Below the pieces are notes generated by a model. The model saw nothing but the letters and a program-made list of their open reading frames with translations, was not told the origin of the DNA and did not search any database. A program made the translations under genes and the position numbers. 64,000 bases of DNA, taken from positions 1 to 64,000 of the IMG/VR virus record IMGVR_UViG_3300028592_000004; one strand, given 5' to 3'. How positions within the stretch are numbered: the stretch's first letter is position 1; each line of letters begins with the position of its first letter. Below are positions 37,483-63,023 of this stretch, piece after piece.

Positions 37483-38301
37483 TTACGGTCGACTGAGACG
37501 CGCAATCACAGGCACCTTCCAGAGCCACGGAGAGGGATGCTGGAAGGTGTCGGTCGTCGCGACCGTGTCGTACATACTCAGCGCGTCGAGGCCTTTGGAG
37601 AAGATTCCGTGGGCCACAAACAGGGCTGTTGATCTGGCGCCGGCGAGCCGCGGATGAAGCATCTTGAAGGTTGCTCCACCATCGCAGATGTCGTCCACAA
37701 CGAGGACGTGCAGACCAGTGGCATCAACAGGCTTGTCGTCAACGCCGCGGATCTCCTTGTAGACGAGAGATCCGGTCGACGGATCTCGCGACTTCTCGCC
37801 GTACCAGACGTGAAAAGAGGGAACACGAACCGCCGCTTCCTGCTGACTGCGAAGGAAGGCTCCCTTATCCGGCAACAGGATGACCGTATCTTCGCTTGGC
37901 CAGCCCAGGCGCTGCAGGAGAGTGTCGACCTCGGGCCACATCGAAACGTTCTCAAGATTGTCGATCTCAGCGAACGCTGCCGCACTGTGGGCCTCGTAGG
38001 TACGCACGCGGGAGTAACCGAGCTCGTTGATCAGCCGGCCGAACACGCGTAGCGAGAACGGCGACAGCTTCTCAGGGTCAGTCACACGATCCTGCCGGCC
38101 GTACGGTAGATAAGGGAGAACGAGAGTCCTCGGCTGCATACCGTTCCGCTTGAGGACGTCTGTCGCAAGGAGCAGATTCATCAGCGCGGAACTGGATCGA
38201 ATGTCGGCCAGGAGAAACCCGTCGTTCTCCATGCCGGCTTGCAGCACAACATGCTGCTCCCCGGCGGAGAAGGTCAGCGTCTTAAAACTGGACAGAAGCA
38301 T
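37483..38301 (-). CDS. prs: PRPP synthetase-like protein (possible Adps of NARP1)
   Basis: FSAGEQHV, LPYLPYGRQDR, EAHS, LPDKGA, VVDDICDGGATF, AHGIFSKG. Confidence 0.85.
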   Translation of the reverse strand: MLLSSFKTLTFSAGEQHVVLQAGMENDGFLLADIRSSSALMNLLLATDVLKRNGMQPRTLVLPYLPYGRQDRVTDPEKLSPFSLRVFGRLINELGYSRVRTYEAHSAAAFAEIDNLENVSMWPEVDTLLQRLGWPSEDTVILLPDKGAFLRSQQEAAVRVPSFHVWYGEKSRDPSTGSLVYKEIRGVDDKPVDATGLHVLVVDDICDGGATFKMLHPRLAGARSTALFVAHGIFSKGLDALSMYDTVATTDTFQHPSPWLWKVPVIARLSRP

Positions 38302-39685
38302 GGAAGTTCCTTCGCACTTCGTCGAACGTGTAGCGCCGCAGGATCTGCCCGTTTCGGAAAACAGGCATGAGTTCGCTGGGCGCGTCGGGCGGTGCCGAGT
38401 CGTAGGTGACCCCGGCGCGGAGAGCGACCCGGCCAACATGGCTCTTCTTGCCAGAGTCGGTGATCGGGTCCTTGAAGATGTTGACGTTGCGACCGTTCCG
38501 CGTGATCTGCGTGGCCTTGATCGCCATCCCCAGAGTGTCCCGCGTGCCGGCCCGGAGCAGACCACCAGCTCCGATGACGATATTCGATCCGTCGTACCCA
38601 GAGCCGACAGAGCGAATCAGCGTCTCCTCGTACCGCTGATGGTACATCCCGTCCCCGTAGATCAGCCCGATCTTCGGATTCAAGATACGGTACGGACTGT
38701 CGGCCAGCCGCTCGCTGCCGAACAACTCGTCCAACAGGACCAGCACACCCTTGGCCTCCGGCGTACCTGGCTCAGCCTTGGCATCACCGCAGATGATGTC
38801 CGGCGGGTAACCGCTATCGGGACGGATGATGACCCGACCGTTACGGGCAAGGATCTTGTCCTTCAGCCGCGGCAGAATGTTCGTACAGACGTGCCAGATC
38901 GAGTAGGTGTCCGAGACGATGGAAACGTAGCCGTCCGGATACAACTCCAGCATCCGCTCGAACGCCTCGAACTCGAACTCGCGACCGTAGGAGCACATGA
39001 CAGAGTGCTCGGAGGCGGGCACAGACATCATGCACGGCGATTCCGTTGGGAGGCTGTAGTACTCCTCAATGAACGGCTCGGCCACGATCGTGTCGCTGCC
39101 GCGGAACACGATGAGATGCGCTGCGCCGGAGATTGCCGCTGACTCCTCAGACGTGTCGCTCCGGTAGCCGAAGTCGTGCACGTTGAATTCCAGAGGCTGT
39201 CGCGAGTAGCGACGAGCGATTCGGTAATACTCCAGACTGTTTGTCGCGACGGTGCAGGGATACCACACCTTCAGCAGCAACGATTCCAGAAAGCCCGGCG
39301 CCCACGGGAAGTCGTCGTGCGTCGACTCCAGCGTGAGCAGGGCATTCTTCACCGGCAGGACGGTGCCCTCAGGCACGGCGCTGATCTCGACAGGCCACTG
39401 ACCGAGGTCAGCGATGCCGTGGAGCTTCTCCTTGATGTCGTCGCTCGGCTCGGACCCGAGGATCCGCCGACGCCGCTTGAGGAAGTCCTCGACGTTGGCC
39501 GTCGTGATGGGCTGAGTCAAGTACTCCATCAGGTAGTACTGCAAGCCGAAGAACAGGAGCTCCTCGAAGTACTTGTCGCTTCGGGCGTTCAGATACGAAA
39601 TCACCCGGGTGGTCCCGGGTGCGTACTGTTCCATGTGGCCCATCTTGTAGACGTCAGTCCGCAGAAGCGGGTGAACTAGCTTCAT
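38282..39685 (-). CDS. nadV: Nicotinamide phosphoribosyltransferase-like protein (possible Namat of NARP1)
   Basis: TDVYKMGH-x-x-QY, HDFGYR, ASEHSVM, SIVSDTY, IIRPDSG, IYGDG, KDPITD-x-GK-x-S. Confidence 0.92.
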   Translation of the reverse strand: MKLVHPLLRTDVYKMGHMEQYAPGTTRVISYLNARSDKYFEELLFFGLQYYLMEYLTQPITTANVEDFLKRRRRILGSEPSDDIKEKLHGIADLGQWPVEISAVPEGTVLPVKNALLTLESTHDDFPWAPGFLESLLLKVWYPCTVATNSLEYYRIARRYSRQPLEFNVHDFGYRSDTSEESAAISGAAHLIVFRGSDTIVAEPFIEEYYSLPTESPCMMSVPASEHSVMCSYGREFEFEAFERMLELYPDGYVSIVSDTYSIWHVCTNILPRLKDKILARNGRVIIRPDSGYPPDIICGDAKAEPGTPEAKGVLVLLDELFGSERLADSPYRILNPKIGLIYGDGMYHQRYEETLIRSVGSGYDGSNIVIGAGGLLRAGTRDTLGMAIKATQITRNGRNVNIFKDPITDSGKKSHVGRVALRAGVTYDSAPPDAPSELMPVFRNGQILRRYTFDEVRRNFHASVQF

Positions 39686-39694
39686 GACTCGCTT

Positions 39695-40087
39695 TCATTC
39701 GATGTCGATGCCTCGCACGTTTGTTGGCGAGGCTGGTGGAGGAGGTGATTCAGGCGACAACATAGCCTGACGCTGCAGAAAGTCGAGCAAGGCGACAGCC
39801 TGAGAACGTGTCACAGGTTTCATCGCCGTCAGCTGCTCAGTGCCGCGAACCCAGACCTCGAACTTCACGGGGTCTGTTTCGATGATGAGGTTGAGTCGGC
39901 CGAAGCGGAGTGAAAAGCCAGAAGCCGACTGCGAATGCTTCGGTCCTGGATCCTGGTCAGCGAAGACAGCCAACGCATTCGCCTGCGGACCAGTCATCAG
40001 CAGAACAAGATCGACATCGGAGTTGGGCTTTGGCGATCCGTAGACGCGACTCCCTGTCAGGATAGCGTTCGGCCGCAGGTCAGGCAC
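39695..40087 (-). CDS. Minimal nucleotidyltransferase (MNT)-like protein
   Basis: ILTGSRVYG...SDVDLVLL. Confidence 0.7.
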   Translation of the reverse strand: MPDLRPNAILTGSRVYGSPKPNSDVDLVLLMTGPQANALAVFADQDPGPKHSQSASGFSLRFGRLNLIIETDPVKFEVWVRGTEQLTAMKPVTRSQAVALLDFLQRQAMLSPESPPPPASPTNVRGIDIE

Positions 40088-40496
40088 CGGTCTTGAACCG
40101 CCCCGGCCAGAAGATCTCAAGCTCGCGAGCCGCCGCTTCGGGGCTATCGCTCGTGTGGGACACCGAGAACGGCAACCTCCGCATGAAGTCCCCGCGGATG
40201 GTGCCCGGCTCCGGGTCCACAGTAGAACCCTGCATTGCTCGGGCTTTCTCGATCGCGTTCTCTCCGGAGATGACCACTGCGATCATCTCCAAGTCCGCGG
40301 TGACGTCGATCAACCGCTCGAAGAAGTCCTTTGACTTATGCTCTTCGTACAGCTTCTCGATCTTGCCGTAGTTCGGCGTAATCATCTCCACATGGAGAAT
40401 ATCGAACCGACGCTCAAGCCGGGCCAAGATCGTCCCTGCCAGCTCTCGCTTCAGGGCGTGGTTCTTGATGAGAAAGAGGGTGACTTGCTGCGACAT
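40080..40496 (-). CDS. ndk: Nucleoside diphosphate kinase (divergent)
   Basis: TLFLIK, HKSKDFF, PGTIRGDF, HTSDSPEAAAREL. Confidence 0.85.
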   Translation of the reverse strand: MSQQVTLFLIKNHALKRELAGTILARLERRFDILHVEMITPNYGKIEKLYEEHKSKDFFERLIDVTADLEMIAVVISGENAIEKARAMQGSTVDPEPGTIRGDFMRRLPFSVSHTSDSPEAAARELEIFWPGRFKTGA

Positions 40497-41692: not shown

Positions 41693-42100
41693 TCATTCCG
41701 TGTCTATGTATCGGGCTTCAGATGGAGTCTGTTGAACGGCCTCATGATACGTGACCGTCAACTCTTCCGACAACGGAATTGCCTGGTCGTACCTCTCGGC
41801 CAGGCGGAACGTCCAGTCCAACTGGGCAAAGCGATTGACCCGTTCCGTGATCAGCAGCCGGCAGCGAACCGGACTCGACAGCAGAACGGAGAGTTCACCG
41901 TCTTTGGCCGAACAGGTGTTGACGGTGCCTTCCAGATCGTGAATCGAACACCGGACATCAAAGAGGCGATCCAAAGCGAACTGGATCATCAACAACAGCT
42001 GTGAGCTGGCGATGTCGTGGGTGTTGATGTCCCACAGCGACTGCCGGATGGCTTCAATCGTCCAGGCGCACTTACGACTCAGTCCCGGGAAGAGGCTCAT
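41693..42100 (-). CDS. Hypothetical protein
   Basis: ATGA overlap. Confidence 0.55.
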   Translation of the reverse strand: MSLFPGLSRKCAWTIEAIRQSLWDINTHDIASSQLLLMIQFALDRLFDVRCSIHDLEGTVNTCSAKDGELSVLLSSPVRCRLLITERVNRFAQLDWTFRLAERYDQAIPLSEELTVTYHEAVQQTPSEARYIDTE

Positions 42101-42723
42101 TTGCGGCGAGGGGTCCGGGCCAGATCAAGCGGGCGTCCTGCCTCCTCGAACAGCCGGTCAATCTCTTTCACTTCACTGCGAAAGAATGGACTTTGACACA
42201 GGGGATCCTCAAACGCAGCCAGAAGATCCCGACAGTCTTCCACCCACACTCGCACAGCTTCGCCGTGGTCTTTGTAGGTGAACGGTGTGAATCCGATCGT
42301 GAGATCGGCCGCGGCGCGGAGCTCAGCCAGCTTGGCGAGTTTCTCAGGCTCCTCGGCAGTGACGATGGCGGAGCGGAGAGCTTGATGGCGCCTGGCGGTG
42401 CCGATGCGAGGATCAGGCGAAAGCATGCAGACGGCCCGAGCGATCGAAAGCTCGCTCATGTCGCAGACCTCTTCGAAGGTCATGCCGTAGTGCTGAACAC
42501 AGTAGATCATGCGGGAGGCACAGCGAATGACCGCGACGTAGATCTGGATGTCATCCAGGGTCGGGTCGGCCCACTCGCGGGCATAGCGATCGGCGATGTC
42601 TCCGATCGCTTCTGGGTCCGCAATGGTCGGATCCTTTCGGCGAGCAAGCAAGTAGACATGCTGCCGATTGACCTGATCCATGAGCGCGTCCAAGTCAATG
42701 GACGGAGAGAACTGCAGTGACAT
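42097..42723 (-). CDS. Degenerate Mesh1/SpoT-like HD-domain protein
   Basis: RRKDP, MTFEEV, ARAV-x-x-LS-x-D, KLAKLAE align with Mesh1, but LHD-x-x-ED is MIY-x-x-QH. Confidence 0.6.
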   Translation of the reverse strand: MSLQFSPSIDLDALMDQVNRQHVYLLARRKDPTIADPEAIGDIADRYAREWADPTLDDIQIYVAVIRCASRMIYCVQHYGMTFEEVCDMSELSIARAVCMLSPDPRIGTARRHQALRSAIVTAEEPEKLAKLAELRAAADLTIGFTPFTYKDHGEAVRVWVEDCRDLLAAFEDPLCQSPFFRSEVKEIDRLFEEAGRPLDLARTPRRK

Positions 42724-42741: not shown

Positions 42742-43104
42742 CTACTTACCCGAGTTGCCGGAGAACCGGCCACCCTTCTGATCCTTGTCCTTCTTGTCCT
42801 CTCGCGACTGCTGGCCCTTACCGCCCTTCTGGGCCTGGGCAGTCGCCTTCGGGGGCTCCGCGGCCTTCTCAGCCGGAGCGCTGGCAACCACCTGAGGAGC
42901 CGGCGTGCTGGTCACCGGCGGGTCGACAACCGCTGGCACCGGAGCAGGGGACGCAGCGACCGGTGCAACGACCGTTTCGGCAGTTGCTGCAGGTTTGGAA
43001 GTGACAGGCTCGGGAGCGGGCTGGGTTGTTGCCGACCGCGGCCGAGCCCGATCCACCAGTTTGCCCTGTTGCCGAAGACGTTCGCGGTAGTCGATCTGAC
43101 TCAT
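42742..43104 (-). CDS. Pro/Ala/Thr/Val-rich low-complexity protein
   Basis: TTQPAPEPVTSKPAATAETVVAPVAASPAPVPAVVDPPVTSTPAP. Confidence 0.6.
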   Translation of the reverse strand: MSQIDYRERLRQQGKLVDRARPRSATTQPAPEPVTSKPAATAETVVAPVAASPAPVPAVVDPPVTSTPAPQVVASAPAEKAAEPPKATAQAQKGGKGQQSREDKKDKDQKGGRFSGNSGK

Positions 43105-43116
43105 TCTCGGAATCCA

Positions 43117-45333
43117 TTACGAGTTAAGTCCGTAGTGCCAGCGGATTTCTTTCTGCCAATCTGAGCCGTACTTCGCACGGAAGACGTCTCTGGCAGCCGC
43201 GGCATCACAAATCTGGTGATGAGCGATCTGGTCGCCCCTTTGACCGTCCAAGTATACCCGACGCGAGCGATAATGGAACACGAAGCACCGGTCTGTCAAT
43301 AGAACCCGGAATCCGTCATCCCGAGCCCGCTTCTGAAGTTCGTGGCCTGCGCCAAATCCACTCAGTGGAAAGTCCTCGTCCAGGAGGCCCACGCGATCAA
43401 ACACAGACCGGGAAACCATCATGGCCTCAGTCGAAACGACGGGGCATTCTTCAGTCGTCACGCCAGCTTCGTAGTGGTGGATATCACCGAAATGTCCACG
43501 GTTCTGCAACTCCTGAGCGTTCGACACAGCGGCGATGATTCCATCCGCAGGCTGCGGGTGGTCATGAGCGACGACAGCCATCTCGTGAAAGAAGCCTGCG
43601 CTCAGAGCCACGTCATTGTGCAGCAGCAGAAAACGGTCGTATGCCGGATTCGGCATAACCGATTCCAGAGCCATGTTGACTGCCTTCGACCAGCCGATGT
43701 TCTTGCCCGGCACCAGTACAGTCTCGTCAGCAACAGCGTGGTAGTCCCCACTGTTGTCGACCACCACGACCGGTAACCCGGCGTCCCGCGCCTTATGCAC
43801 GAGCCCGGTCGTCATGTCGTGATACTTGAAGGTGACGATGATCACGACAATTCGGCCTGCTGTCTTCTCCGCTGGGTCGAGCCACTGGTCGTCCAGCCGT
43901 TTGAGCATTCGCCTCAGCGACTGACGACGGACATTGAGGCGGTGCCCCATGTCCCGCTCAACCTGATGATTGTCGAGAGCGACGTGGTTGCAGTGGCCGA
44001 CCACAACCGTCTTTGCATGCTTGGAGAGTACGCGAAGCTCGCGGCCCCGGACGTGCCCCAGCCGGTACATGAGCTCGTACTTGTCGTTGTTGCCAAAGCT
44101 GATGTCCTCCCGGAATTGCTCCTTCGTCAACCCGCGGAAAGCAAGCATGCACTCCGTGGCCGGCGACAGCACGTGACCTGACTGCGATGTGCGCTGACAA
44201 GGGATCGAGTAGTAGCGGCGGCTCTGATGCTGCTCACAACCCTGCCGGAACGCCTCCCACTGCCGATCGGTGAAGAACGTGTCACCATCGAAGACGACTG
44301 TCACCTGAGCCACGAGCGAGCCGTACCAGATCCCGAGGTTGCGAGCCCGGTTGATCTGGATGGCCCGCACGACCTTCTGTGCGGTCGACTTGGCCTTGCG
44401 GTAGGCGTGAGGAGAGAACGGCAGTTCCATCCAATGCCGCTGGTACTTCTCCAGCAGCTCGATGTACTTTGCGCGAAGCTCCTCGTTGTGGAGCGAGTTC
44501 ACGATGTAGATCTCGTGACAGTCCTCTTGAGCCGGCATCTGGAGAATGTGCTCCAGCGTGGCTAGCCGTGAGCCCGCGTTGTCCCGCGGCGGCAGCTCGT
44601 TGCCGACGATCCGCACGACGCAGAACGAGAACTTACGGAGCACCTCTTTGCCAGGCAGCTCCACCTTGTGATTTCGGGATCCACGGCGCCGAATCGTGAC
44701 GAACTGATTCGGCGGTCCGTGGTGGATGAACCCGGGTCCCAGAACGTGGCCCTTCACCTTGTGCTTCCACAAGACATAGGGCAGGCTGATCTGGTCCCGG
44801 TAGGAACCACGGGCGATCTCTTTCCACCAGGAGGCCAAGATCGGAGCCGCGGCGCGATCGGCGATCAGAACGCCTGTCTCGAAGTGGTCTCCCTTGTCAG
44901 GGAACCCTTCCTTGCGATACCGGCGGAGTTGGCGGTTCTGAATACCGCTCTTGTCCCACCCGTCACGGTTGATGCAGTCGACCTCCTGGGCCACAGAGTG
45001 AACCAGGGGCCGGCGGAAGGCCGCAATCGGCCCGTGGAGCTTCATGTCCCGAAAGACCGCCAGATCCATCTTGGCGATCAGGTTCGAGTCCATCCAGACG
45101 ACGCGTTTCGCCCTCGGGAAGAGCCTCAGGATGTGGGTCTTGTGCCACCGGGCGGTCCGGCGGGACGGCAGCGCCACGTCGATCGTAGGGACCGCAATCC
45201 AGCCTTTCCGTCCCATTCGCTCACGAACCGTAGGATCGGAGCAGAAAGCAATGCACGGGTATTGAACAGACGGCACCCGTGGAATGACATCGGTCGCCCC
45301 GATCATCGCCGTGACAAAGACCAAGTCGTCCAT
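43117..45333 (-). CDS. Three-domain glycosyltransferase (DUF616/TOD1-MUCI70-like, GT-A-like, GT2-like)
   Basis: RWHK...VVWMDSN...RDQISLPYVLW; VVFDGD; VVVVDNSG...NIGWSKAVN...LLLHND...FDRVGLLDEDF. Confidence 0.75.
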   Translation of the reverse strand: MDDLVFVTAMIGATDVIPRVPSVQYPCIAFCSDPTVRERMGRKGWIAVPTIDVALPSRRTARWHKTHILRLFPRAKRVVWMDSNLIAKMDLAVFRDMKLHGPIAAFRRPLVHSVAQEVDCINRDGWDKSGIQNRQLRRYRKEGFPDKGDHFETGVLIADRAAAPILASWWKEIARGSYRDQISLPYVLWKHKVKGHVLGPGFIHHGPPNQFVTIRRRGSRNHKVELPGKEVLRKFSFCVVRIVGNELPPRDNAGSRLATLEHILQMPAQEDCHEIYIVNSLHNEELRAKYIELLEKYQRHWMELPFSPHAYRKAKSTAQKVVRAIQINRARNLGIWYGSLVAQVTVVFDGDTFFTDRQWEAFRQGCEQHQSRRYYSIPCQRTSQSGHVLSPATECMLAFRGLTKEQFREDISFGNNDKYELMYRLGHVRGRELRVLSKHAKTVVVGHCNHVALDNHQVERDMGHRLNVRRQSLRRMLKRLDDQWLDPAEKTAGRIVVIIVTFKYHDMTTGLVHKARDAGLPVVVVDNSGDYHAVADETVLVPGKNIGWSKAVNMALESVMPNPAYDRFLLLHNDVALSAGFFHEMAVVAHDHPQPADGIIAAVSNAQELQNRGHFGDIHHYEAGVTTEECPVVSTEAMMVSRSVFDRVGLLDEDFPLSGFGAGHELQKRARDDGFRVLLTDRCFVFHYRSRRVYLDGQRGDQIAHHQICDAAAARDVFRAKYGSDWQKEIRWHYGLNS
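45247..45266. promoter_or_regulatory. Variant of 20-bp site inside 5' end of GT gene
   Basis: AGCAATGCACGGGTATTGAA. Confidence 0.4.
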
Positions 45334-45336
45334 GAC

Positions 45337-46140
45337 TTACCAAGTTGTACGCGTCCTGGGAACGTTGCCACCGATCGCGGTCGGGGTCTCCGTGAACTCC
45401 GCAACATACGCTGGCCGGAGCAGGGATTCCAGACCGAGAAGAATCGCAGCCTGGATGATGTTGGGTGCCCAGGTCGCTCTACGCCAGGAAACATGCCCAG
45501 GCGTGAACATGTAGTAGAGGGTGGCACGCTGCTGCGTCGTCTTCAGCGGCCTGGCGCCGTGAATCATCGTCTCAGTGAAAGCGATGATGTCGCCCTGTTC
45601 CAGCCGCGGAGCAACGAGAGCACCGTCAGCCACGGGATAGCCATCCTCAAAGACATGCTTTCGGACAGCACCACCCTGCATAGCGAAGGCACTCTTGTGA
45701 GAGCCCGGAAGGAGCACCAGGCCACCCTCGTCACCACCTTGTGCGTGAAGTGGGATCCCGACAGAGACCTGCGTACAGAAGGGCGATCCGTTCTGGTTGA
45801 AGAACAGATGGGTTCCTTGGGCGGCGCCTGGACCGCCATGAAGATTGCTGACTTCGACCCCGTTGCTGTCTGGCTGCAGTCGAATGAAAGCGTGGTCCAA
45901 GCGAAATCCGCTGCCCAGGACCTTTTCAAGCAACTTCATCAAGTTGATGCTCTTCAGCAAGCGAAGCCCGCCGTACGGAGTGACGTCAAGGAAGGGCACC
46001 TTGACCGACTTGGCTTCCTTGATTCGGGCCTCAAGACCCACCCGAACCTCCTCAACCCAGTCCGCCGGCAGCAACTTGCTAAAGTGGACAAAGCCGAGGG
46101 AGTCGAACAGATACTCTTCACGACTCGGAACATAGCTCAT
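45337..46140 (-). CDS. PhyH-like 2OG-Fe(II) oxygenase, copy 1
   Basis: RLDH, LHGG, GGLVLLPGSHKS, GDIIAFTETMIHG. Confidence 0.8.
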   Translation of the reverse strand: MSYVPSREEYLFDSLGFVHFSKLLPADWVEEVRVGLEARIKEAKSVKVPFLDVTPYGGLRLLKSINLMKLLEKVLGSGFRLDHAFIRLQPDSNGVEVSNLHGGPGAAQGTHLFFNQNGSPFCTQVSVGIPLHAQGGDEGGLVLLPGSHKSAFAMQGGAVRKHVFEDGYPVADGALVAPRLEQGDIIAFTETMIHGARPLKTTQQRATLYYMFTPGHVSWRRATWAPNIIQAAILLGLESLLRPAYVAEFTETPTAIGGNVPRTRTTW

Positions 46141-46913
46141 GTGGGAGGCCTTCTTTCATTGCCGATCGGCATCGGCTTTCCGGGGGAATCATCGAACCGA
46201 CCAGACCACGGCAGAGCAATGAGGCGTCTCTCCTCATCGTTCCTCGGATAAGATCCGTATCGATTCTGTTGTTGGATCGGATCGCGCCAGGCAATGAAGC
46301 CGGGAGCGAACTTGTAGTACAAGACACGGCGCTCTGAGGCGCCAATTTTCAACCCGCGATCGCCATGCACCAGGCTCTCGCTGAAGACAACAACGTCGCC
46401 CTCAAACAGATCCGGCGTATAGGTCGCTTCGGCCATAGTGTCGAACACCTCGGCCATCAGCTTGTGGCCGTCTGCGTCGTACCGCGACTTGTGAGAGCCC
46501 GGGATGAAGCAAAACCCGCCATCGTCTTTGAGCTGACCCCGGAGTGTGACACCGATCGTCAACTGGCTGTAGAGCACGCGCTCGCCGACGCCGGTGATGA
46601 AACAGGTGCTCTGGGAGGAGAGCGGGCCGCCGTGGAGATTCGGCTTTGAGGAGTTGCTGGAGAGCCCGACTGCGTGATCCAGCCGATAGCGATCGCCGCA
46701 CAGCGTGCGACAGATGTCACGAATCGCTGGCAGCGCCATGATGTCCCAGAACACAGCCCCAAGATCCAGGATCGGGAACCGGTGCGGGAGAGTTTCACCG
46801 AAGCGGGACACGATAGCGGCATTGGCCTTCTGCGTCAGGTCGGCCGAGATCGCATTTCGAACAACGGTGCAGCCAACCGAGTCGAGGATGTAGTTTTGAG
46901 CTTTTGTCAGCAC
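46137..46913 (-). CDS. PhyH-like 2OG-Fe(II) oxygenase, copy 2
   Basis: RLDH, LHGG, GGFCFIPGSHKS, GDVVVFSESLVHG. Confidence 0.8.
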   Translation of the reverse strand: MLTKAQNYILDSVGCTVVRNAISADLTQKANAAIVSRFGETLPHRFPILDLGAVFWDIMALPAIRDICRTLCGDRYRLDHAVGLSSNSSKPNLHGGPLSSQSTCFITGVGERVLYSQLTIGVTLRGQLKDDGGFCFIPGSHKSRYDADGHKLMAEVFDTMAEATYTPDLFEGDVVVFSESLVHGDRGLKIGASERRVLYYKFAPGFIAWRDPIQQQNRYGSYPRNDEERRLIALPWSGRFDDSPGKPMPIGNERRPPT

Positions 46914-47974
46914 AGGGGTTCCCTTTCGGAAAGCAGATCGAGCCAGCGCTTCTTGAAAAGCTGTTCGGATTTGACGGCCGTCGCGCCACACCCATTCTGC
47001 AGGTGATTCAAGACGCGCACGTTGTTGGAAAGGAGCATGACCGAATCGGCAACAAGTTGCGGGTCCACCTTCACAGTCGGAATGTGGCCGCAGTTATCTT
47101 TGAGGCGACCCTCAAACAGGATCCCGTCTTCACCATCGGTTAGCAGCTGATTGATCGGCGGGTTGTTCGGCGCTACAACGGGCGTACCGCTTCGTACCGA
47201 GAGGTACGGCATGAGACCAAAGATCTCTTGAGCCACCGGGAACACCGTCACGTCGTGAGCAGCCAGGGCCAGCAGCTGATCCGTATACGAAGCAAACCGG
47301 ACCAGATCCAGTCGGCCGCGGACCTGACGCGACATCCGCTTGAGCAGGACATCCGCCCCGGAGGACAAACGACCGTGCAAGATCGTCAGGCCCACTCGTG
47401 GATTCTCCAGAAGCGAATTGCAGACGTCGAAGAACGACTGGTCGACGAACTCAGTCTGAGAGTACGTCAGAGGGATCAGCACCCGAAACAGGGACAGATC
47501 CTTCTTGGGCAGCTTTCGCTGTTGTGGCCGCGGTGGAGCCCAAGGGACATGGAAGGGGCTGCCGTAGTCATAGCGGCGTCGCAGGACCATCTTCGCTGCA
47601 GCGTTCGGCGCGACAACGAAGTCGAACTTCTTCAGCAGATCCTTCCAGTTCCCAGCGTCCTCATGCCACTGATAAACGAAGATCGTCCGAATCTTCTGCC
47701 GCTTAACCCACTCAACTTGAGCGATGGCGTGGGTGGGATCGTCATCTGGCAAGTTGGCCCAGATAACGACTTCCTGCTTGCGAGCCCACTCAGCAAAGCG
47801 AAGGCGTTTGTGATTGAAAACACTCTTGTCCCACTCCGGTCGCACGACAGGGATTTGTCGCAGCGACGTATGGAACGTGACAGTCATGCCGCGCTGATAG
47901 AGGAAGTCGGCAAGCGCGAGCACGGCCAGAGTTGAGTCCTGACGCTGGTAACGCAAGCAGATTCCAACATTCAC
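46907..47974 (-). CDS. GT-B (GT4-like) glycosyltransferase
   Basis: DFVVAPN; HDVTVFP...EIFGL...LSVRSGTPVV...LLTDGEDGILF. Confidence 0.75.
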   Translation of the reverse strand: MNVGICLRYQRQDSTLAVLALADFLYQRGMTVTFHTSLRQIPVVRPEWDKSVFNHKRLRFAEWARKQEVVIWANLPDDDPTHAIAQVEWVKRQKIRTIFVYQWHEDAGNWKDLLKKFDFVVAPNAAAKMVLRRRYDYGSPFHVPWAPPRPQQRKLPKKDLSLFRVLIPLTYSQTEFVDQSFFDVCNSLLENPRVGLTILHGRLSSGADVLLKRMSRQVRGRLDLVRFASYTDQLLALAAHDVTVFPVAQEIFGLMPYLSVRSGTPVVAPNNPPINQLLTDGEDGILFEGRLKDNCGHIPTVKVDPQLVADSVMLLSNNVRVLNHLQNGCGATAVKSEQLFKKRWLDLLSEREPLC

Positions 47975-48750
47975 TTTCCGCCTCCGAGAACGGTCAGACA
48001 CTTTGAGCGGTGCATGATTCGAACCGGACCATCGCCAAAGTGGAAGAACCGACTCTCGGCCTCAATCTTAGGGAGCATCTCGCGAATTGAGGAGCGGCTA
48101 GGCGCCTTTGTTCGCACGTTGGCCCATAGTCGGTCGTGATCCCAGGTGTTTTGACCGTGACAAACACGCATGTACAGCCAGGGTTTTCCCTTAACCCAGG
48201 AGAGGCTGTCAAGGTCGATCCCGTCGCGAATGACGGAATCCTCGCCAATCCGTTGCTCGGGATAGAGGAGCGGAAGGGGGACCCGGTGGATGATCGTGCC
48301 CGGAATGAACTTCTTCCGGTAGTCGCGAACGATCACCGAATCCCAGGAAACAACATGCAGCTCGCGATCCGCAGGAAACCAGTAAAGCTGAGACGTCAGG
48401 AACGAGGCGGTGATCGACGGCCCATGCGTCGCCAGCTGCGTGAACAACCGGTTCGGATGCGACTGGTCATCATCGTCCCACTGGACTGCGAGCGGCGTCT
48501 GGACGGCGTTGACGGCGATCTGCCTCAGGAAGCCCAACGTTTGCTTCTCCGAGTGGATGATTCTCACCTTCAACCCGTAGCCGTCGCAGAGCTTCAGCAG
48601 CAGATCCTGGTCACGAGGCGTGAAGTCGTCTTCGACAACGATGAGCTGACTAACGCGATGAGTCTGGCGACTCAAGCTGGCCAAGCTCCATTGAACCATC
48701 GGCAGGCGGGAAGCCTGCGTGACCATGAGCGCGGTGATTGCTTGCGACAT
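47971..48750 (-). CDS. GT2-family glycosyltransferase
   Basis: SLSRQT, LIVVEDD, TLG-x-LRQIAV, QWDDDDQSHPNRL. Confidence 0.8.
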   Translation of the reverse strand: MSQAITALMVTQASRLPMVQWSLASLSRQTHRVSQLIVVEDDFTPRDQDLLLKLCDGYGLKVRIIHSEKQTLGFLRQIAVNAVQTPLAVQWDDDDQSHPNRLFTQLATHGPSITASFLTSQLYWFPADRELHVVSWDSVIVRDYRKKFIPGTIIHRVPLPLLYPEQRIGEDSVIRDGIDLDSLSWVKGKPWLYMRVCHGQNTWDHDRLWANVRTKAPSRSSIREMLPKIEAESRFFHFGDGPVRIMHRSKCLTVLGGGK

Positions 48751-49441
48751 CTCGACCCTCATCGAATAGGAGACCTCGACGGCCCCATTGAATGCTAGGG
48801 ATCTTGTGTCGTCCGAGGGTGCTCCACTCATTTCCAGTGTGATCCACAAGGCTGGGAACGTGGACCAGGATAGGAAGTCGAAGCTCGACACGGAACACGT
48901 TCCCGACGAGAACGTCCACCTTGCGGTGGCTGTCGTGCTTCTGGAAGCGAGGGTGAGCCAGCAGGGCGTTGGCGGATTCTCGCGGCATGCAGATGGCCAG
49001 GGCGCCCACGAACGCGTTGTCGTGGAACGTCGCTTCCTGCCAATGATCAGGCTCACGAACCTTTTCCCGCTGGTAATGCGGGACCATCTTCGGGCTCGTG
49101 TAAGGCGACAGGAAGCCCACGGTCGGATGCGGAGAGAACGCATCCTTGAGGATGTCCGCCGCTCCGGGACGCCAGACATGGTCGTCCTGAAGCATCAGGA
49201 TCCAGCTGGCATTCGTATGCGTCAGAAGATGGTGCACACCGCGCTTCCAGTTCGGAAAGCACCCGAGCGGATGATCCGAAGGAAGCCATTCGCAGCTGTC
49301 CACGAGCTGAGGCCGCTCCATCGGTTCAGCGAAGACGTGGATCGTCTCGCTGAAGCCGGCCTCACGGATACTGCGAAGCGTCTTGAGAAGGAGAGACCGC
49401 GGACGAAACGCGGTCTGGATTCCAATCGCGAGCGACTGCAT
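48650..49441 (-). CDS. GT-A-fold glycosyltransferase-like protein
   Basis: LGCFPNW, WILMLQDD, PSLVDHTG-x-x-WST. Confidence 0.65.
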   Translation of the reverse strand: MQSLAIGIQTAFRPRSLLLKTLRSIREAGFSETIHVFAEPMERPQLVDSCEWLPSDHPLGCFPNWKRGVHHLLTHTNASWILMLQDDHVWRPGAADILKDAFSPHPTVGFLSPYTSPKMVPHYQREKVREPDHWQEATFHDNAFVGALAICMPRESANALLAHPRFQKHDSHRKVDVLVGNVFRVELRLPILVHVPSLVDHTGNEWSTLGRHKIPSIQWGRRGLLFDEGRDVASNHRAHGHAGFPPADGSMELGQLESPDSSR

Positions 49442-49445
49442 GGTC

Positions 49446-51434
49446 CTACTTCACCAGGTTGAATACCCGGCACGCAAAGGCTCCTGGCATGATCTTCGGC
49501 TTGGGCTTCGGCAGCGCCGCTGCCTTCTGACCGCCTCCGAACTGCTGAGACAGGATCTGAGCGCCACCGGCTGTCTGGGCATCGTTTCGATACTGCTCCA
49601 CTTTCGATTTGACAATGCTGTGGAGGGCTTCATTTTCCTTCTTGAGCTGCATCATCTCGGAGCGCCGCTGCGTCTCCTCCATGCCCAGCAGCTCCTGAGC
49701 AATCTGATCGGCCTGGGCCATGAGGTCCTGCGGCGTATCGGCACTGGTCTGACCGCCCGCTCCTCCACCCATACCGCCACCCATGCCACCCATCATGCCA
49801 GCTGCAGCCTGAGCGTTCGGGTCTCCCTGACCGCCGGCCGCGGCATTCGGATCCCCGGGCGGAGGCTGTTGCCCAGCCATCGCGCCGAGCTGCTGCTGAT
49901 CGGCCTGACCCTGCATGTCTTCCTGGAACTGCTTCTGCAGCTGCATGACGTACCGCTGCTCTTCCAGAAGCCGCTTCTGCTCTTCGCGGAAGTCGACACC
50001 CATCGCGGCCAGCCCGGTCTCCTGGCTGATCTGCTGCCCCATCATGAGCTGCAGTTTCGCCATCTGCTGATTGAGATCGTCCGCCATCGTGATCGGCTTG
50101 AGGCGGGCCGACACCGGCTCCCACGAGAAGTACTGGGCGACGGACTTGATGAGCCACCGCAGGAATCCGTTGAGATTGTGCGTGAGCGGCGTCCAGAGGC
50201 TCTCGAACAGCCGCAGGGCTGCCGGAGCTGCCTGGGCCGTGAGGGTGCCCTTGTAGAGCTCTTGAGGCACACCCACGTCGTTCAGCAGCGTGTTCTGGCC
50301 GAACTCCATGAGCTGGTACGGAGCCATCTGCGCAGCTTCGCCACCAAGAGCCTGGTACTGCACGGCCTGGGGCAAGACGTTCCACGCCGCGGGATCCCGG
50401 CGCCGGCGCCGCAGCATCGCATTGACGTGCGACACGAACTGACCCATGTTCGTTCCGACGAGCGGATCCGACGCAGCCTCGTTGGCACCGCCGCGGGGCA
50501 TGGGCGTGATGACGCGGAAGGGGATGACGTAATCGAGCGCGATCGCTTCGTTGAAGCGATGCAGGACCTGGACGTACCACGCCTGGCGGAAGTTCGTGAT
50601 GGCCCGCGGGATCCCCCAGCTGCGGTTGCGAAGCCCGGACAGGGCCGCATCCTTCATGTGGAAGACAATCTCGGGATCGAACAGCAGGTCGTGGTTCTTC
50701 TTGACGGCCTGAATGATCTCCCAGTCGGCTCGCTCCAACACGAACAGGTCGTCGCCGCGGGTGATCTGCTGGCGATAGTCGTGGGGGATCTTCCAGCGGT
50801 ACTGGCAGTCTCCCGACTTCGGATCTTCCTTGATCTCGATCTCGTGCGGGCTCCACCGCTTGATCTTGACCTCGCCCTCTTCCCCGGACCTGCGGTCGAT
50901 GTGGTTCCACTCGCCGTCGTAGCCGCACTTGGGGCACTTGGCATGGAAGTTGAAGTCCTTCCAGCGGAAGTTGTACTTGTCGTTGTTGTAGATCTCGCGC
51001 AGAGGTGCTTCGTGGCCGCAGCCTCGACCCTCCGGCCCGTGACCTTTGCAGGAGAGCGAGCGACGGAACGGAACCAGCAAGGACAGGAACGCGTTCCCGT
51101 AGCACAGATAGTCGCTCGCAACCTCCCGGCAGAGGTTGTAGATGTTCAGGCGATCTTCGAGGAACTCCTTGAACTTCTCTTTTTCCTCATCACTGGCCTC
51201 GGTGTCCGTGAACTCCACGGTCGTGATGAAGTACGCAATGACACGTTCCATCGCTTGGCGATAGGTGCCATTGGCCATCCAGATGTACTCGGCCCAGCGC
51301 AGCGCATCCTGCATCGAGTCCGGCATAGCCGTGCTGGCCATGTCGCAGAACGGATCCGGAAACAGCTCGCCGCTACGGAGCGAACTGTAGTAGGAGCCGC
51401 TGCCAGCTCGATTGGAGAGGAGTCCCTGCGCCAT
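49446..51434 (-). CDS. Probable portal protein with zinc-finger insertion
   Basis: 662 aa; DYLCYGNAF...IKRWSP...VFHMK...GIP pattern and Q/G/M-rich disordered tail typical of portals; no search performed. Confidence 0.55.
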   Translation of the reverse strand: MAQGLLSNRAGSGSYYSSLRSGELFPDPFCDMASTAMPDSMQDALRWAEYIWMANGTYRQAMERVIAYFITTVEFTDTEASDEEKEKFKEFLEDRLNIYNLCREVASDYLCYGNAFLSLLVPFRRSLSCKGHGPEGRGCGHEAPLREIYNNDKYNFRWKDFNFHAKCPKCGYDGEWNHIDRRSGEEGEVKIKRWSPHEIEIKEDPKSGDCQYRWKIPHDYRQQITRGDDLFVLERADWEIIQAVKKNHDLLFDPEIVFHMKDAALSGLRNRSWGIPRAITNFRQAWYVQVLHRFNEAIALDYVIPFRVITPMPRGGANEAASDPLVGTNMGQFVSHVNAMLRRRRRDPAAWNVLPQAVQYQALGGEAAQMAPYQLMEFGQNTLLNDVGVPQELYKGTLTAQAAPAALRLFESLWTPLTHNLNGFLRWLIKSVAQYFSWEPVSARLKPITMADDLNQQMAKLQLMMGQQISQETGLAAMGVDFREEQKRLLEEQRYVMQLQKQFQEDMQGQADQQQLGAMAGQQPPPGDPNAAAGGQGDPNAQAAAGMMGGMGGGMGGGAGGQTSADTPQDLMAQADQIAQELLGMEETQRRSEMMQLKKENEALHSIVKSKVEQYRNDAQTAGGAQILSQQFGGGQKAAALPKPKPKIMPGAFACRVFNLVK

Positions 51435-51477: not shown

Positions 51478-51642
51478 CTACGAACGCCGAATCCGGTCCT
51501 TGGCTCGTTCGAGCAGGTCCCGGCGATACTCAGCCTGGTTGTCCTCTGCGGACTTGGACCGTGGCTGCGGCGTCGGGCGTGTCTCAGTCGGACGGTCGTC
51601 AAGGTCGGGCGTGTGTGCTCCGATATCAGCGCGTTTGATCAT
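51478..51642 (-). CDS. 54-aa hypothetical protein
   Basis: Own translation MIKRADIGAHTPDLDD... Confidence 0.5.
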   Translation of the reverse strand: MIKRADIGAHTPDLDDRPTETRPTPQPRSKSAEDNQAEYRRDLLERAKDRIRRS

Positions 51643-52627
51643 CCTGATCTCTCCTGACGTCGAACACCATCAACACGCAGTAGTGCGTATCGCCGTCTTG
51701 GAAGTCCATGCCGACCGACCGGCAGAGGTACGAGCAACGGTGGCTTGCGACGTAAACTCCAATGTTATCGTCGGATGCAGGAGGGAAGTAGCGGTAGCCC
51801 TTGTAGGATCGCTGGAAGGCCAGGATCAGGAAGCCCGTGGTCTCCGTCTTGAGCGACAGGACAACCCGGTGGTAGTAGCTCTCGTGATGCCCGGAACCGT
51901 CGATCTCAAACTCAACCTGCTCTTCGGGTTCTGCAGCGTGAGAGCGAGGTGCTGCAGGCGCGGGCGAAGGTGCAGCGCCGAAGTTCTCACCCGAGAACTG
52001 CTGGATGATCTGCCGGGACGGAGCTGCTGCCGATGCCTGGGCTCGATTCGCATTCGACCGGAACGCACCCACGACTCCGGCCTGTGGTGCGGGGGCCGGA
52101 GCGGCCGGCGGGGCCTGTGCCGTCTTGACGTCGTCCGGCAGGATGAGGGACTTACGCGTCGGACCTGCCGTCTCGTCGGCGAGACCGGCGACGAACATGC
52201 TGAGAAGCCGGCGGCGACCGACCTCGTCATCGGTGATCTCGATGCCCTGGCTCTGAAGTCTGGCCTTGAGGTTCGCCAGGGCCTGCTGCATTGCCTCGCC
52301 GGTGAGGTTGCACTGATTCATGACGTGCGAGGAGAAGCCGTCCTCGTCCGGATCGACCACAACCGGGATCTTCCGATAGTCGGTCTGGCCGTTCAGAGCC
52401 CTCGGAACGCCGTTCTCAGTCGCCCGGGAGAGCATCACAGCTCCGCCACCTGCGGAGAAGCGCGGGGCGTTGACGGCAACACCGTCCGAACTCGGCGAAC
52501 TCATCCCCAGGGCTGCGCCGCTGTGGTAGTTGCTCGGATCAGGCGTGTGGGCCACCCAGCCCAGCGAACCGGTCTGCGTCGGCGGGGCCTCGTTGAAGAA
52601 CGGGTTGAGAAGAATGTGTCCGGCCAT
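51626..52627 (-). CDS. Hypothetical protein with Ala/Pro linker
   Basis: 333-aa ORF, AAGGA upstream. Confidence 0.65.
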   Translation of the reverse strand: MAGHILLNPFFNEAPPTQTGSLGWVAHTPDPSNYHSGAALGMSSPSSDGVAVNAPRFSAGGGAVMLSRATENGVPRALNGQTDYRKIPVVVDPDEDGFSSHVMNQCNLTGEAMQQALANLKARLQSQGIEITDDEVGRRRLLSMFVAGLADETAGPTRKSLILPDDVKTAQAPPAAPAPAPQAGVVGAFRSNANRAQASAAAPSRQIIQQFSGENFGAAPSPAPAAPRSHAAEPEEQVEFEIDGSGHHESYYHRVVLSLKTETTGFLILAFQRSYKGYRYFPPASDDNIGVYVASHRCSYLCRSVGMDFQDGDTHYCVLMVFDVRRDQDDQTR

Positions 52628-57305: not shown

Positions 57306-57325
57306 TTCAATTCCCGCGTTTTGAT
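57306..57325. promoter_or_regulatory. 20-bp site, copy 7 (inverted spacer)
   Basis: TTCAATTCCCGCGTTTTGAT spanning MTase stop and abutting next ATG. Confidence 0.65.
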
Positions 57326-58164
57326 TTCTTCTTGGGAGGTTTTGGAGCTGGATCGATGTGCGGCGGGTCGAGCAGGCTGGCTGGCTTCACCATCGCCACC
57401 CGCGCATTCGCCGCCTTCCCATACTCCTTGGACAGCTCGAAGCCCAGGCCAAGACGACCCAGCTTCTTCGCGACGGCGATTGTTGTACCCGATCCGGAGA
57501 ACGGATCCATCACCAGATCGCCAACATTCGAGCACAGGCGGATGATCCGCCCCAGGATCTGCTCCGGCATCTGCGTCTTCACGAGCTTCTGACGGCCCTT
57601 GAAGGTGCCGCAGATCCGCGGGCAGTGCCAAACATCACCGGTCTCTTCGTAGACGAACGGGATGTCCTGGGGACGCATGATCCAGGTGTTGTCGGGAAGC
57701 CGACCATCCGGGTTCTGGCGCTGATCGTTGTAGACCAGCTGCCGAGCGCTCGGCAGACGGACCTGATCAGCGTTGAACGTGAAATTGCTCTTCTGCTTGG
57801 TGTAGTACAGCAGGTGGGTGTGGGACCGCGTGAAGTTGTTCGCACAGTTCACGCCGAACGTGTAGTGCCAGATAACGTGAGAACGTTTCCGGAACCCCTC
57901 GTTCTTGCAGACGATGTCCAGCTCCGAGACGTACTCGTCGCCGATGGCCAGCCAGAAGCTCCCGCTGGCTTTCAGAACACGCTCAACGCCAGCGATCCAC
58001 TGCTTCGACCACGTCAGGTAGTCCTGCACGGTCCGCTTGTCGTCGTAGACGTCGTAGTCAAAGCCAATGTTGAATGGCGGATCTGCGAAGACCAAGTCGA
58101 CGGATCGCTCCTCAACTTTGGCCATTCCCTTGATGCAGTCCCCCGGGCGGATCTCATGATCCAT
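57307..58164 (-). CDS. Orphan beta-class DNA amino-methyltransferase (m6A/m4C)
   Basis: DLVFADPPFN (motif IV) N-terminal to MDPFSGSGTT (motif I). Confidence 0.9.
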   Translation of the reverse strand: MDHEIRPGDCIKGMAKVEERSVDLVFADPPFNIGFDYDVYDDKRTVQDYLTWSKQWIAGVERVLKASGSFWLAIGDEYVSELDIVCKNEGFRKRSHVIWHYTFGVNCANNFTRSHTHLLYYTKQKSNFTFNADQVRLPSARQLVYNDQRQNPDGRLPDNTWIMRPQDIPFVYEETGDVWHCPRICGTFKGRQKLVKTQMPEQILGRIIRLCSNVGDLVMDPFSGSGTTIAVAKKLGRLGLGFELSKEYGKAANARVAMVKPASLLDPPHIDPAPKPPKKKSKRGN

Positions 58165-59616: not shown

Positions 59617-60095
59617 GCGGTCAGCCGATTGAGGACTCTCTTCCAGAACGGAAGGGGTTGCTGAGCGAAGACCGTCTCCGCGGCGCTCACCAGACCAGCC
59701 AGGTCTACGATCGCCGGCACCTTGCCGTCGAACGTGACATCGCGAATCGACATGAACCAGGCACCGGTCACCATCTGGCCAATCTTGGCCGACAGGATCA
59801 GCTGCAGCCGCGGATCGAGCAGGAAGAAGCCAGCCGTCTCCAGTGCCTCACGAGGCGATTTGACAGCGGAGTTCGGGAACTCCTGCATGGCCCGCGAGAA
59901 CACCGCGCAGGCGGCTCCCAGCTGCTGGTGGGTGATTCCCTCCTTCGCCATGAAGTCGTCGATCCAGGGCTCACGAGAGGAGCTCAGGCCCATTACCGCT
60001 GCCCTCACCAGCGGCGGAACCGCGTAGGCAAGATCTCGCTGAGGCGAGTAGGGGATGGCATTCTCTGCGCCCTTAGGCGCGAACTGAAGCGTCAC
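59598..60095 (-). CDS. Hypothetical protein
   Basis: ORF in gene run. Confidence 0.6.
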   Translation of the reverse strand: MTLQFAPKGAENAIPYSPQRDLAYAVPPLVRAAVMGLSSSREPWIDDFMAKEGITHQQLGAACAVFSRAMQEFPNSAVKSPREALETAGFFLLDPRLQLILSAKIGQMVTGAWFMSIRDVTFDGKVPAIVDLAGLVSAAETVFAQQPLPFWKRVLNRLTAWMPRG

Positions 60096-62646: not shown

Positions 62647-63023
62647 TTCTTAAACGCGAACCCCAGGTAGAACCGGAAACGACCATCGCTGGTCTCTTCG
62701 ATGTCTCCAGAAAGGAAGATGTGGATGTGGTTCGGCTGAACACCAGCCGCCGCAACTTCGAAGGCGAGCTGCAGCGCCAAGGAAGCCGCGTACGCGATCG
62801 CGTGCGTCGGCTTGTTCACCGACAGGTACTCGAACATCTGTGCAACCGCCATCGCTTCCGTGCGACAGTGGGTGATCGACGTCTGGGCATCAGCTTTGAT
62901 CGGCGAAGCGGCGATATACCACGTGTCACCGGGTTTCTTTCGAATGAACCCAGCAGGTGTCTCGCGACGACCAATGGTCGCCACAATGTCCTCAAGCGGA
63001 ATCTCAGAGTGTGTGACTCTCAT
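62643..63023 (-). CDS. Hypothetical protein
   Basis: GAG before MRVTHSE. Confidence 0.55.
   Translation of the reverse strand: MRVTHSEIPLEDIVATIGRRETPAGFIRKKPGDTWYIAASPIKADAQTSITHCRTEAMAVAQMFEYLSVNKPTHAIAYAASLALQLAFEVAAAGVQPNHIHIFLSGDIEETSDGRFRFYLGFAFKK

Follow-up and report, generated by a model that had tools for sequence, protein, structure and literature searches.

What does the group of sugar-enzyme genes beside the portal gene of a large soil phage build, and on which molecule does it act? The question was raised by a 64,000-nucleotide stretch of DNA (hereafter, the window), the first 64 kb of the 229,210-bp virus record IMGVR_UViG_3300028592_000004 in IMG/VR (CheckV completeness 100%), near-identical copies of which occur in several soil metagenome runs of 2019. 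In the window, six consecutive minus-strand genes separate the portal gene (49446–51434) from a gene for a 120-residue Pro/Ala-rich protein (42742–43104). An initial annotation had described them as a cluster of glycosyltransferases (GTs) and phytanoyl-CoA hydroxylase (PhyH)-like oxygenases that might hydroxylate and then O-glycosylate the Pro-rich neighbour, with DNA hypermodification as the alternative. The analysis below leads us to propose, with moderate confidence, that positions 43117–49441 hold a cytoplasmic cassette for glycan assembly and tailoring, which acts on a phage product in a lineage of large soil phages.

Enzymes of the portal-adjacent array

The GC content of the window is ~60% and nearly all of its genes lie on the minus strand. 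The six genes are tightly arrayed downstream of a late structural gene, the portal, with gaps of 3–18 nt or overlaps between neighbours. In a scan for promoters and terminators from 41.5 to 53 kb, sites were no commoner than in shuffled sequence. The portal protein (662 residues; 49446–51434, minus strand), which has a low-complexity C-terminus rich in Gln, Gly, Met and Ala, was identified with tblastn, which matched it at 26–29% identity to Vibrio phage D69 (1e-59) and to the gene annotated as portal in Salmonella phage Arash (5e-57); a weak PHROG match was concordant (phrog_64, portal, 4.6e-4). In Arash and D69 a small protein and a giant RNA-polymerase-like gene come after the portal, and the transferases are not there. 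Because these two are the nearest database relatives of this portal, a comparison with the ‘Moraphage’ jumbo phages as possible kin was set aside; their four core GTs belong to a T4-like core set (PMC12619734).

The first gene of the array (48650–49441, minus strand) starts 4 nt past the portal stop codon. Its 263-residue product is assigned to the GT-A fold by a PHROG glucosyltransferase match (phrog_854, 4.2e-9) and by structural neighbours in the Atlas (phage GT-A, GNT-I and GT25-like clusters, TM 0.70–0.76 over residues 1–230), and it has a DxD-like motif, LMLQDDH, at about residue 86. Next comes a gene for a 259-residue GT2-family enzyme (47971–48750, minus strand; alternative start 48762) with a DDDD motif at residue 92, which was matched by PF00535 at 5e-5 with a truncated query and at 3.2e-9, above the cut-off, in the genome scan (48430–48702). 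The sequence GAGG lies 8–9 nt upstream of the ATG at 48750. From either start, ~100 nt of the GT2 gene coincide with the end of the GT-A gene, in a different frame, and the final ~30 residues of the GT-A protein, in the overlap zone (48650–48762), fall outside the predicted fold. The third gene (46907–47974, minus strand; open reading frame (ORF) open to 48001) encodes a GT4-like enzyme of 355 residues that matches Glyco_trans_1_4 (4.4e-7). Its structural matches in the Atlas are to GT4 clusters (TM 0.78–0.84) with a full GT-B fold, and its profile matched GT-B enzymes in the PDB at 7e-6. The E-x7-E motif is present in degenerate form, with a variable first Glu and a second position that is not Glu and is Ser in most aligned relatives.

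The last gene of the array (43117–45333, minus strand) encodes a 738-residue GT. Pfam, PHROG and AlphaFold2 (AF2)/Foldseek comparisons point to three GT-A-type domains, in agreement with the initial annotation, the C-terminal one on weak evidence. The N-terminal domain (residues ~1–215, nt 44689–45333) resembles the TOD1/MUCI70 family (PF04765, 4.6e-5; phrog_26101, 1.7e-9). The Pfam match scores 23.3 bits against a cut-off of 21.4 and covers only positions 143–291 of the 314 in the profile; a match to GT8 is equally weak. We read the match as generic GT-A similarity, which does not imply the plant cell-wall chemistry that had been hinted at from DUF616/MUCI70.

The middle domain (residues ~230–495, nt 43849–44646) has no Pfam match and belongs to a GT2-like family with 659 homologs in a library of 1.8 billion proteins, mostly stand-alone proteins of ~255 residues; PF00535 matched 20 of 74 family members. 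When modelled by AF2 with the homolog alignment, it has a GT-A fold (predicted local distance difference test score (pLDDT) 94.8), with Foldseek matches to the chondroitin polymerase K4CP, GlcAT-P and SpsA. Its DGD motif at residue 349 contains an invariant Asp (D120 in the family alignment). The C-terminal domain (residues ~495–680, nt ~43290–43851) is placed as GT2-like by phrog_2456 alone among the profiles (8.7e-5), together with a GT2-like β1 strand and an NDV motif. PDB sequence searches with the 738-residue protein and with its C-terminal domain alone gave nothing usable, and a sequence search with the whole protein found one match besides itself, to the middle domain. In a 226-kb contig with a 52% identical portal (L016; L numbers denote the loci compared), each of the three domains is encoded by a gene of its own, in a different order, so the window gene is a fusion. 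Strain variants in two other soil samples fell on third codon positions of the 738-residue ORF in 39 of the 39 cases listed, which shows that the gene is real and under purifying selection.

The GT-A, GT2, GT4-like, two PhyH-like and three-domain GT genes named in the initial annotation all lie on the minus strand at or near where it had placed them, and its picture of some six GT domains in a cluster that builds glycans is upheld by Pfam, PHROG and fold matches. We are highly confident of these gene and enzyme identities. No 19-residue stretch of any cluster protein has a mean Kyte–Doolittle hydropathy above ~1.6, and judged by sequence all the enzymes look soluble.

HygX-like oxygenases and their partner glycosyltransferases

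Two oxygenase genes lie between the GT4-like gene and the three-domain GT gene. Oxygenase 1 (46137–46913, minus strand; GTG start, ORF open to 46991) has 258 residues and oxygenase 2 (45337–46140, minus strand) has 267; they are 28% identical. Their sole Pfam match is PF05721, above the cut-off for both (1.4e-4 and 2e-7 respectively). The top PDB sequence matches of both were 4XC9 and 4XCB, structures of the hygromycin B orthoester oxygenase HygX (also PDB 4XCA and 4ZPI), and oxygenase 1 matched HygX at 7e-7 with phmmer. A profile made from a 12-member family alignment matched HygX at 4.4e-16 over its full length with the motifs aligned, followed by the ectoine hydroxylase EctD (9e-9) and phytanoyl-CoA hydroxylase (3e-7). 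The AF2 model of oxygenase 1 (pLDDT 74) is a double-stranded β-helix, for which ranks 1–16 of the Foldseek search of the PDB were all HygX chains (E 9e-18 to 2e-15, TM 0.58–0.70). These profile and model comparisons indicate that the closest characterised relative of both oxygenases is HygX.

HygX has an unusual H-X-G…E-X3-H iron site and converts the glycoside hygromycin C to hygromycin B by orthoester formation, according to a 2026 review (PMC13374393). This variant site, in which the carboxylate is relocated, is present in both window oxygenases and aligns to the HygX motifs. Oxygenase 1 has LHGG (the H-X-G) at residues 119–122, GSHK at 165, E205-x3-H209 and R221 (numbering of the 284-residue ORF), and oxygenase 2 has LHGG at 100, GSHK at 146, E190-x3-H194 and R205. 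Across the 12 aligned members, which include both window proteins, LHGG, PGSHK and E-x3-HG are invariant or nearly so, and the Arg is conserved. The β-helix fold, the H-X-G/E-X3-H site, YxxDxxG and GSHK are thus common to HygX and the window oxygenases, and like HygX these sit among glycosyltransferases. Unlike HygX, they are phage-encoded, paired with a GT2-like gene and outside any actinomycete antibiotic cluster, and the identity is ~22%. Our literature search returned no paper tying HygX-like enzymes to phages, no work joining phytanoyl-CoA dioxygenase to phage glycosyltransferases, and nothing on Salmonella phage Arash.

The oxygenase identities bear on the model of the initial annotation, in which the oxygenases would hydroxylate Pro or Lys of the 120-residue protein and the GTs would O-glycosylate the new hydroxyls, in the style of extensins and arabinogalactan proteins (AGPs) or of collagen. 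Viral precedents exist in the chlorovirus prolyl 4-hydroxylase (P4H) and the mimivirus L230 hydroxylase-GT. In such P4H and lysyl hydroxylase-GT systems, among them plant P4H with its hydroxyproline O-GTs, as in the window, an oxygenase is found with GTs and a Pro-rich protein. However, the window enzymes come from another branch of the superfamily, that of PhyH, with HygX closest. The H-x-D…H triad of P4H was not found in them; Gly occupies the carboxylate position. The only proline hydroxylase among their structural matches, 7DT0, which acts on free proline, ranked below HygX and DhiD. A P4H identity was ruled out by profile, fold and iron-site motif. A TET/JBP identity was also excluded, both enzymes being clearly PhyH/HygX-like by profile and Foldseek.

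The genes that accompany the oxygenases elsewhere are informative about their role. Homologs were found in other phage-like contigs at 41–42% identity for oxygenase 2 and 33–44% for oxygenase 1, always beside a GT of the middle-domain family and usually with a TOD1-like GT too. In all seven loci with the closest homologs, a GT2-type gene was adjacent to the oxygenase or one gene away. In six of these (the window, L008, L011, L013, L014 and L017) the neighbour belongs to the middle-domain family; in the seventh (L045), the closest match in bacterial metagenome-assembled genomes (34% identity), a GT2 gene directly follows the oxygenase. The oxygenase 2 homologs adjoin GT2-like genes in L008, where the module consists of the oxygenase, two middle-type GTs and a TOD1-like GT, and in L011, where it consists of the oxygenase, a middle-type GT and a polysaccharide deacetylase. 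A 436-kb IMG/VR phage contig (L014, 4000–14100) combines a HygX-like oxygenase and several GT-A genes with two to three methyltransferases, a hexapeptide acyltransferase, a PIG-L de-N-acetylase and a sulfotransferase. The pair of oxygenase and GT2-like gene is a recurrent, uncharacterised module.

A constant GT neighbour is also what a hydroxylase-then-GT pair would show. However, middle-type GTs also occur without an oxygenase (L015, L016 and L018–L024), an asymmetry that fits tailoring of a GT product better than priming. Since the closest homologs always stand beside a GT2-type gene, we read the module as one for sugar tailoring rather than for hydroxylation followed by glycosylation. The balance of probability leans slightly towards oxygenases that act on sugars.

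Cassette variation and candidate acceptors

The lineage comparison covered ten distinct contigs with portals ~50% identical (L004–L007, L016, L017, L034, L037, L038 and L040). The same order was found in all ten: the portal as conserved upstream anchor, zero to two inserted genes, the GT4 gene, sometimes a small membrane protein, and the Pro/Ala-rich protein as downstream anchor. Synteny with the portal and Pro-rich genes in relatives, which the initial annotation had offered as a check, was thus maintained, with GT4 as the sole cassette gene constant next to the portal in every relative. It forms the whole cassette in L004–L007, L034 and L038, and in L037 and L040 it is preceded by gaps without a recognisable cluster gene. 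L017 has GT4, an oxygenase and two GTs; L016 has GT4, a sulfotransferase (PF13469, 6.5e-14) and three separate GTs with no oxygenase; the window has the GT-A, GT2 and GT4 genes, two oxygenases and the fused GT. As the gene content between the anchors varies at a fixed site, the locus is a variable glycan cassette.

The downstream anchor (42742–43104, minus strand) encodes a 120-residue protein, rich in Pro, Ala, Thr and Val and probably disordered, with an N-terminal SQIDYRERLR motif, an internal VVDPP and a Lys-rich tail. Its composition, remarked on in the initial annotation, is indeed rare: it is one of 2 among the 279 predicted proteins of the genome (the basis of all genome-wide protein counts here) that pass a filter for richness in Pro, Ala, Thr and Ser. 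Homologs with NQIxHR and VDPP motifs come after GT4 in all relatives in which the region is covered. The family keeps three short motifs with disordered linkers between them, and neither Ser/Thr content nor Pro positions are conserved. A mucin-like reading of the protein is weakened, since the homologs do not conserve Ser/Thr richness. A predicted complex of GT4 with the 120-residue protein scored 0.00 with the partner disordered, and was given no weight either way.

The position of the Pro/Ala-rich gene after the cassette, in the window and in ten relatives, and the exceptional composition of its product are what would be expected if it were the substrate of hydroxylation and O-glycosylation. 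Yet GT4 and the Pro/Ala-rich protein are kept without an oxygenase in relatives, L016 having four GTs and no oxygenase, so that, unlike in the P4H and L230 systems, the oxygenase is dispensable where the Pro-rich protein is kept. In unrelated phages with the oxygenase–GT module, no Pro-rich ORF was found within 8 kb of it, and the Ser/Thr content and Pro positions of the family are unconserved apart from the three short motifs. With HygX-type oxygenases that are absent from relatives retaining GT4 and the Pro/Ala-rich protein, hydroxylation followed by O-glycosylation in the manner of plant AGPs and extensins is not supported, and we consider it improbable. The 120-residue protein is a weak, rather unlikely candidate for the acceptor in any scheme. 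Alternative acceptor candidates are the other protein that passed the composition filter, of 960 residues (genome positions 188371–191253, minus strand), and a 333-residue protein encoded just upstream of the portal (51626–52627, minus strand), which has a Pro/Ala-rich linker, also present in its L016 and L017 homologs.

In the cassette reading that we prefer, six soluble GT domains (one GT-A, one GT2, one GT4/GT-B and the fused TOD1-like, novel GT2-like and GT2-like domains) would add sugars one by one from host nucleotide-sugars to give an oligosaccharide. The two HygX-like oxygenases would then oxidise its sugar residues, either by hydroxylation or by a HygX-like oxidative cyclisation. The acceptor would be a phage-made protein in or on the virion, and the purpose surface diversification or shielding. 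Here the action of the oxygenases on sugars, the order of the steps and the acceptor are what we infer.

Evidence on the target was also sought in the rest of the genome, in which at least nine GT domains are recognisable, or ten if an unconfirmed gene at 63004 is counted. One of them is fused to a methyltransferase in a 417-residue protein (genome 152278–153531, minus strand; L026 670–1923), whose gene lies between those for a candidate major head protein (154400–155326; phrog_2522, 1e-5) and the tail sheath (145421–148207). Besides the position of the cassette after the portal, this GT2–methyltransferase inside the head–tail module gives a second, indirect hint of glycan chemistry tied to the virion.

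An alternative target is DNA, and many GT-A and GT-B enzymes of phages glycosylate it (10.1101/2023.12.21.572611; PMC13326640). Here the GTs would glycosylate a modified base before packaging, with the oxygenases making or tailoring the handle. The cluster adjoins the portal and is near genes for nucleoside diphosphate kinase, phosphoribosyl pyrophosphate synthetase, a pyrophosphohydrolase and an N6/N4 methylase, and variation of the glycan cassette would also make sense in an arms race with restriction systems. Against this, neither a ThyA homolog (PF00303; the source of 5-hydroxymethylcytosine (5hmC), 5-hydroxymethyluracil (5hmU) and 5-hydroxycytosine (5hoC)) nor a C5-methylase (PF00145) was found in the 229-kb genome, in searches that found their controls in 10 and 9, respectively, of 14 reference genomes, and ThyX is encoded for ordinary thymidine monophosphate synthesis. 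The genome likewise gave no match to Tet_JBP (PF12851), for which the control matched nowhere, so that the sensitivity of this search is unproven. The initial annotation had recognised no ThyA-like or TET/JBP-like gene, and neither kind was found in the whole genome; together these results argue against the known routes of DNA glycosylation. No PhyH-family enzyme is known to act on DNA bases, and relatives with GT4 only would have no hydroxyl handle. Known pathways require a base-modifying partner and usually cluster with it (PMC13326640; 10.1101/2023.12.21.572611). With such partners not found genome-wide, DNA hypermodification is disfavoured, and as the target of the cassette DNA is improbable. 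The N6/N4 methyltransferase makes ordinary DNA methylation likely, independently of the role of the GTs.

A product outside the virion has also to be weighed: the cassette could act on a host protein or an envelope precursor, or on a soluble oligosaccharide or glycoside that is made during infection by a natural-product-like phage pathway. HygX, to which the oxygenases are closest among characterised enzymes, acts on a small-molecule glycoside, genes for radical SAM enzymes, methyltransferases, deacetylases and sulfotransferases accompany the module, as they would in a biosynthetic cluster, and no acceptor gene is common to the unrelated loci. On the other side, no flippase, polymerase or membrane-embedded GT type (GtrABC, Wzx/Wzy) was found among the Pfam matches of the cluster, which together with the absence of strong hydrophobic segments argues against a lipid-linked route to a surface glycan. 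The cluster is also without a transporter, a lipid-carrier GT or a scaffold-forming enzyme such as a cyclitol or aminosugar synthase. Furthermore, even in deeply diverged relatives the locus keeps its place between the portal gene and a second conserved phage gene, and another GT lies within the structural module. We judge these targets unlikely. Taken together, solubility, the missing partners of the DNA routes and the GT in the structural module make a phage-made, probably virion, protein the most economical acceptor; that it is a virion protein is a tentative assignment, with a little less than an even chance.

Several findings weigh against the cassette reading as a whole. No acceptor was identified, and an all-against-all comparison of the unrelated module loci revealed no shared candidate. 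Nucleotide-sugar synthesis is almost nil: the genome has one short-chain dehydrogenase/reductase (SDR) epimerase/dehydratase, and no sugar nucleotidyltransferase was found in it. Where the initial annotation recognised no nucleotide-sugar synthesis genes, this stands for the window and needs amending for the genome, because a NAD-dependent epimerase/dehydratase (PF01370, 1e-43, also matching GDP_Man_Dehyd) is encoded at 200434–202050 (minus strand; L025), two genes from a NUDIX hydrolase and adjoining a PAS-domain protein. The oxygenases have only ~22% identity to HygX, and PhyH-family proteins at 25–30% identity occur in 51 bacterial loci, many with the same motifs and none with phage GTs nearby. 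As they are shared with bacterial PhyH proteins, the motifs mark a wider subfamily and do not prove a sugar substrate, and the chemistry may be plain hydroxylation and not orthoester formation. The C-terminal GT assignment is one weak PHROG match plus motifs, and without a clean E-x7-E the activity of the GT4-like enzyme is not assured. Finally, adjacency in phage core regions can reflect inherited order and not functional linkage.

Related systems and neighbouring genes

The closest parallels to the cassette are viral. Like the 738-residue protein, A111/114R (with three GT functions) and A064R of chlorovirus PBCV-1 are soluble, virus-encoded multidomain GTs. The GT-plus-methyltransferase layout of A064R is mirrored by the GT2–methyltransferase fusion of the present genome. 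Unlike in the chloroviruses, the host is a bacterium and oxygenases (in relatives, sulfotransferases) lie within the cassette; no sequence kinship was shown. The chlorovirus GTs build capsid glycans in the cytoplasm, independently of the host secretory machinery (PMC7826918).

Glycosylated mycobacteriophages carry small sets of GT genes. Here, six GT domains in the cluster and others elsewhere are accompanied by tailoring oxygenases at a fixed portal-side site, in a system known from its genes alone. In mycobacteriophages of the Che8, Corndog and Myrna type, GT genes are thought to place O-linked shield glycans on virion proteins, at the C-termini of capsid and tail-tube subunits, as PMC12619734 reports, citing Freeman et al. 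2023.

DNA-glycosylating phages share GT-A and GT-B enzymes with the window; they include T4, with α- and β-GTs on 5hmC, the TET/5mYOX systems with their GTs, and systems with a ThyA homolog for 5hoC and arabinosyltransferases. Several such GTs in series can build di- and trisaccharides (PMC13326640; 10.1101/2023.12.21.572611). The difference is the base-modifying partner, a ThyA homolog or a C5-methylase with TET/JBP, which was not found in this genome.

Glycosylation by phages is known to affect DNA (T-even phages, TET-type clusters) and, as a recent addition, the virions of mycobacteriophages; it is usually pictured as the work of one or two transferases. Phage glycosylation cassettes as such are therefore already known; we rate as new the variable portal-adjacent cassette with a mobile module of HygX-like and GT2-like genes and a fusion of three GTs. 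The genome equips a bacterial virus with a sugar toolkit like that of giant viruses, part of which forms a variable cassette whose site is constant. If the product of the cassette decorates the virion, it would give phages an equivalent of O-antigen diversity, with consequences for adsorption, for recognition by defence systems or predators, and for stability in the soil. The HygX-like and GT2-like pair could widen the known carbohydrate chemistry of Fe(II)/2-oxoglutarate oxygenases and provide compact enzymes for glycoengineering. A bolder version, which we regard as a long shot, is that the cassettes are swappable and that some, with HygX-like oxidative cyclases, give virion oligosaccharides with oxidatively cross-linked (orthoester-type or otherwise unusual) or, in relatives, sulfated sugars, the pair of oxygenase and novel GT2 being mobile among unrelated phages that include the 436-kb one. 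If true, it would place on a virus, where it has never been seen, a chemistry so far known solely from actinomycete antibiotics.

Two further genes concern the GT inventory. The gene at 63004–63798 (minus strand), outside the cluster, encodes a 264-residue protein with a GT2-like N-terminus and an invariant W-x-DDDS motif; it has five homologs at 35–40% identity and a partial homolog upstream of the L005 and L006 portals. It matched nothing in Pfam, PHROGs or the PDB, by sequence (phmmer) or by profile, and in an hhalign comparison with a GT-A family the DxD strand was all that aligned (probability 0.3%). The initial annotation called it a GT-A gene; the invariant DDD motif remains, and the GT-A label, which was not confirmed statistically, is a guess. 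A 611-residue protein (genome 114389–116224, minus strand; L028 1324–3159) combines a GT9, heptosyltransferase-like domain with a GT2-like one.

The anchors of the cassette have features of their own. In L007 (10022–12970) and L034 (1098–3653) the portal match is interrupted by an insertion of ~1 kb that is absent from the window portal; in L007 the split portal is a single 982-residue ORF, which suggests an intein or a similar in-frame insertion. Next to the Pro/Ala-rich gene in the tight array is a gene for a 208-residue protein (42097–42723, minus strand; phrog_11147, unknown function, 1.2e-3), which also follows the Pro/Ala-rich gene in L016 (tblastn, 35% identity, 3.6e-20). In most relatives (e.g. 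L006 13872–14450 and L007 14939–15466) the Pro/Ala-rich gene is followed by a SEC-C-type Cys protein (CPCGSG…KKCC), whose position is occupied in the window and L016 by the unrelated 208-residue protein.

Genes of nucleotide metabolism lie on both sides of this region. Upstream of the portal region is a pair of genes at 57307–58164 and 60073–60879 (both minus strand), listed as an N6/N4 DNA methyltransferase (PF01555, 6e-51) and a nucleotide pyrophosphohydrolase-like gene. The genes immediately downstream of the cluster, all on the minus strand, include those for a nucleoside diphosphate kinase (40080–40496), a nicotinamide phosphoribosyltransferase (38282–39685; phrog_448, 9e-133) and a ribose-phosphate pyrophosphokinase-like protein (37483–38301). 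The last two resemble the phage gene pairs for NAD+ salvage or reconstitution that counter NAD-depleting defences.

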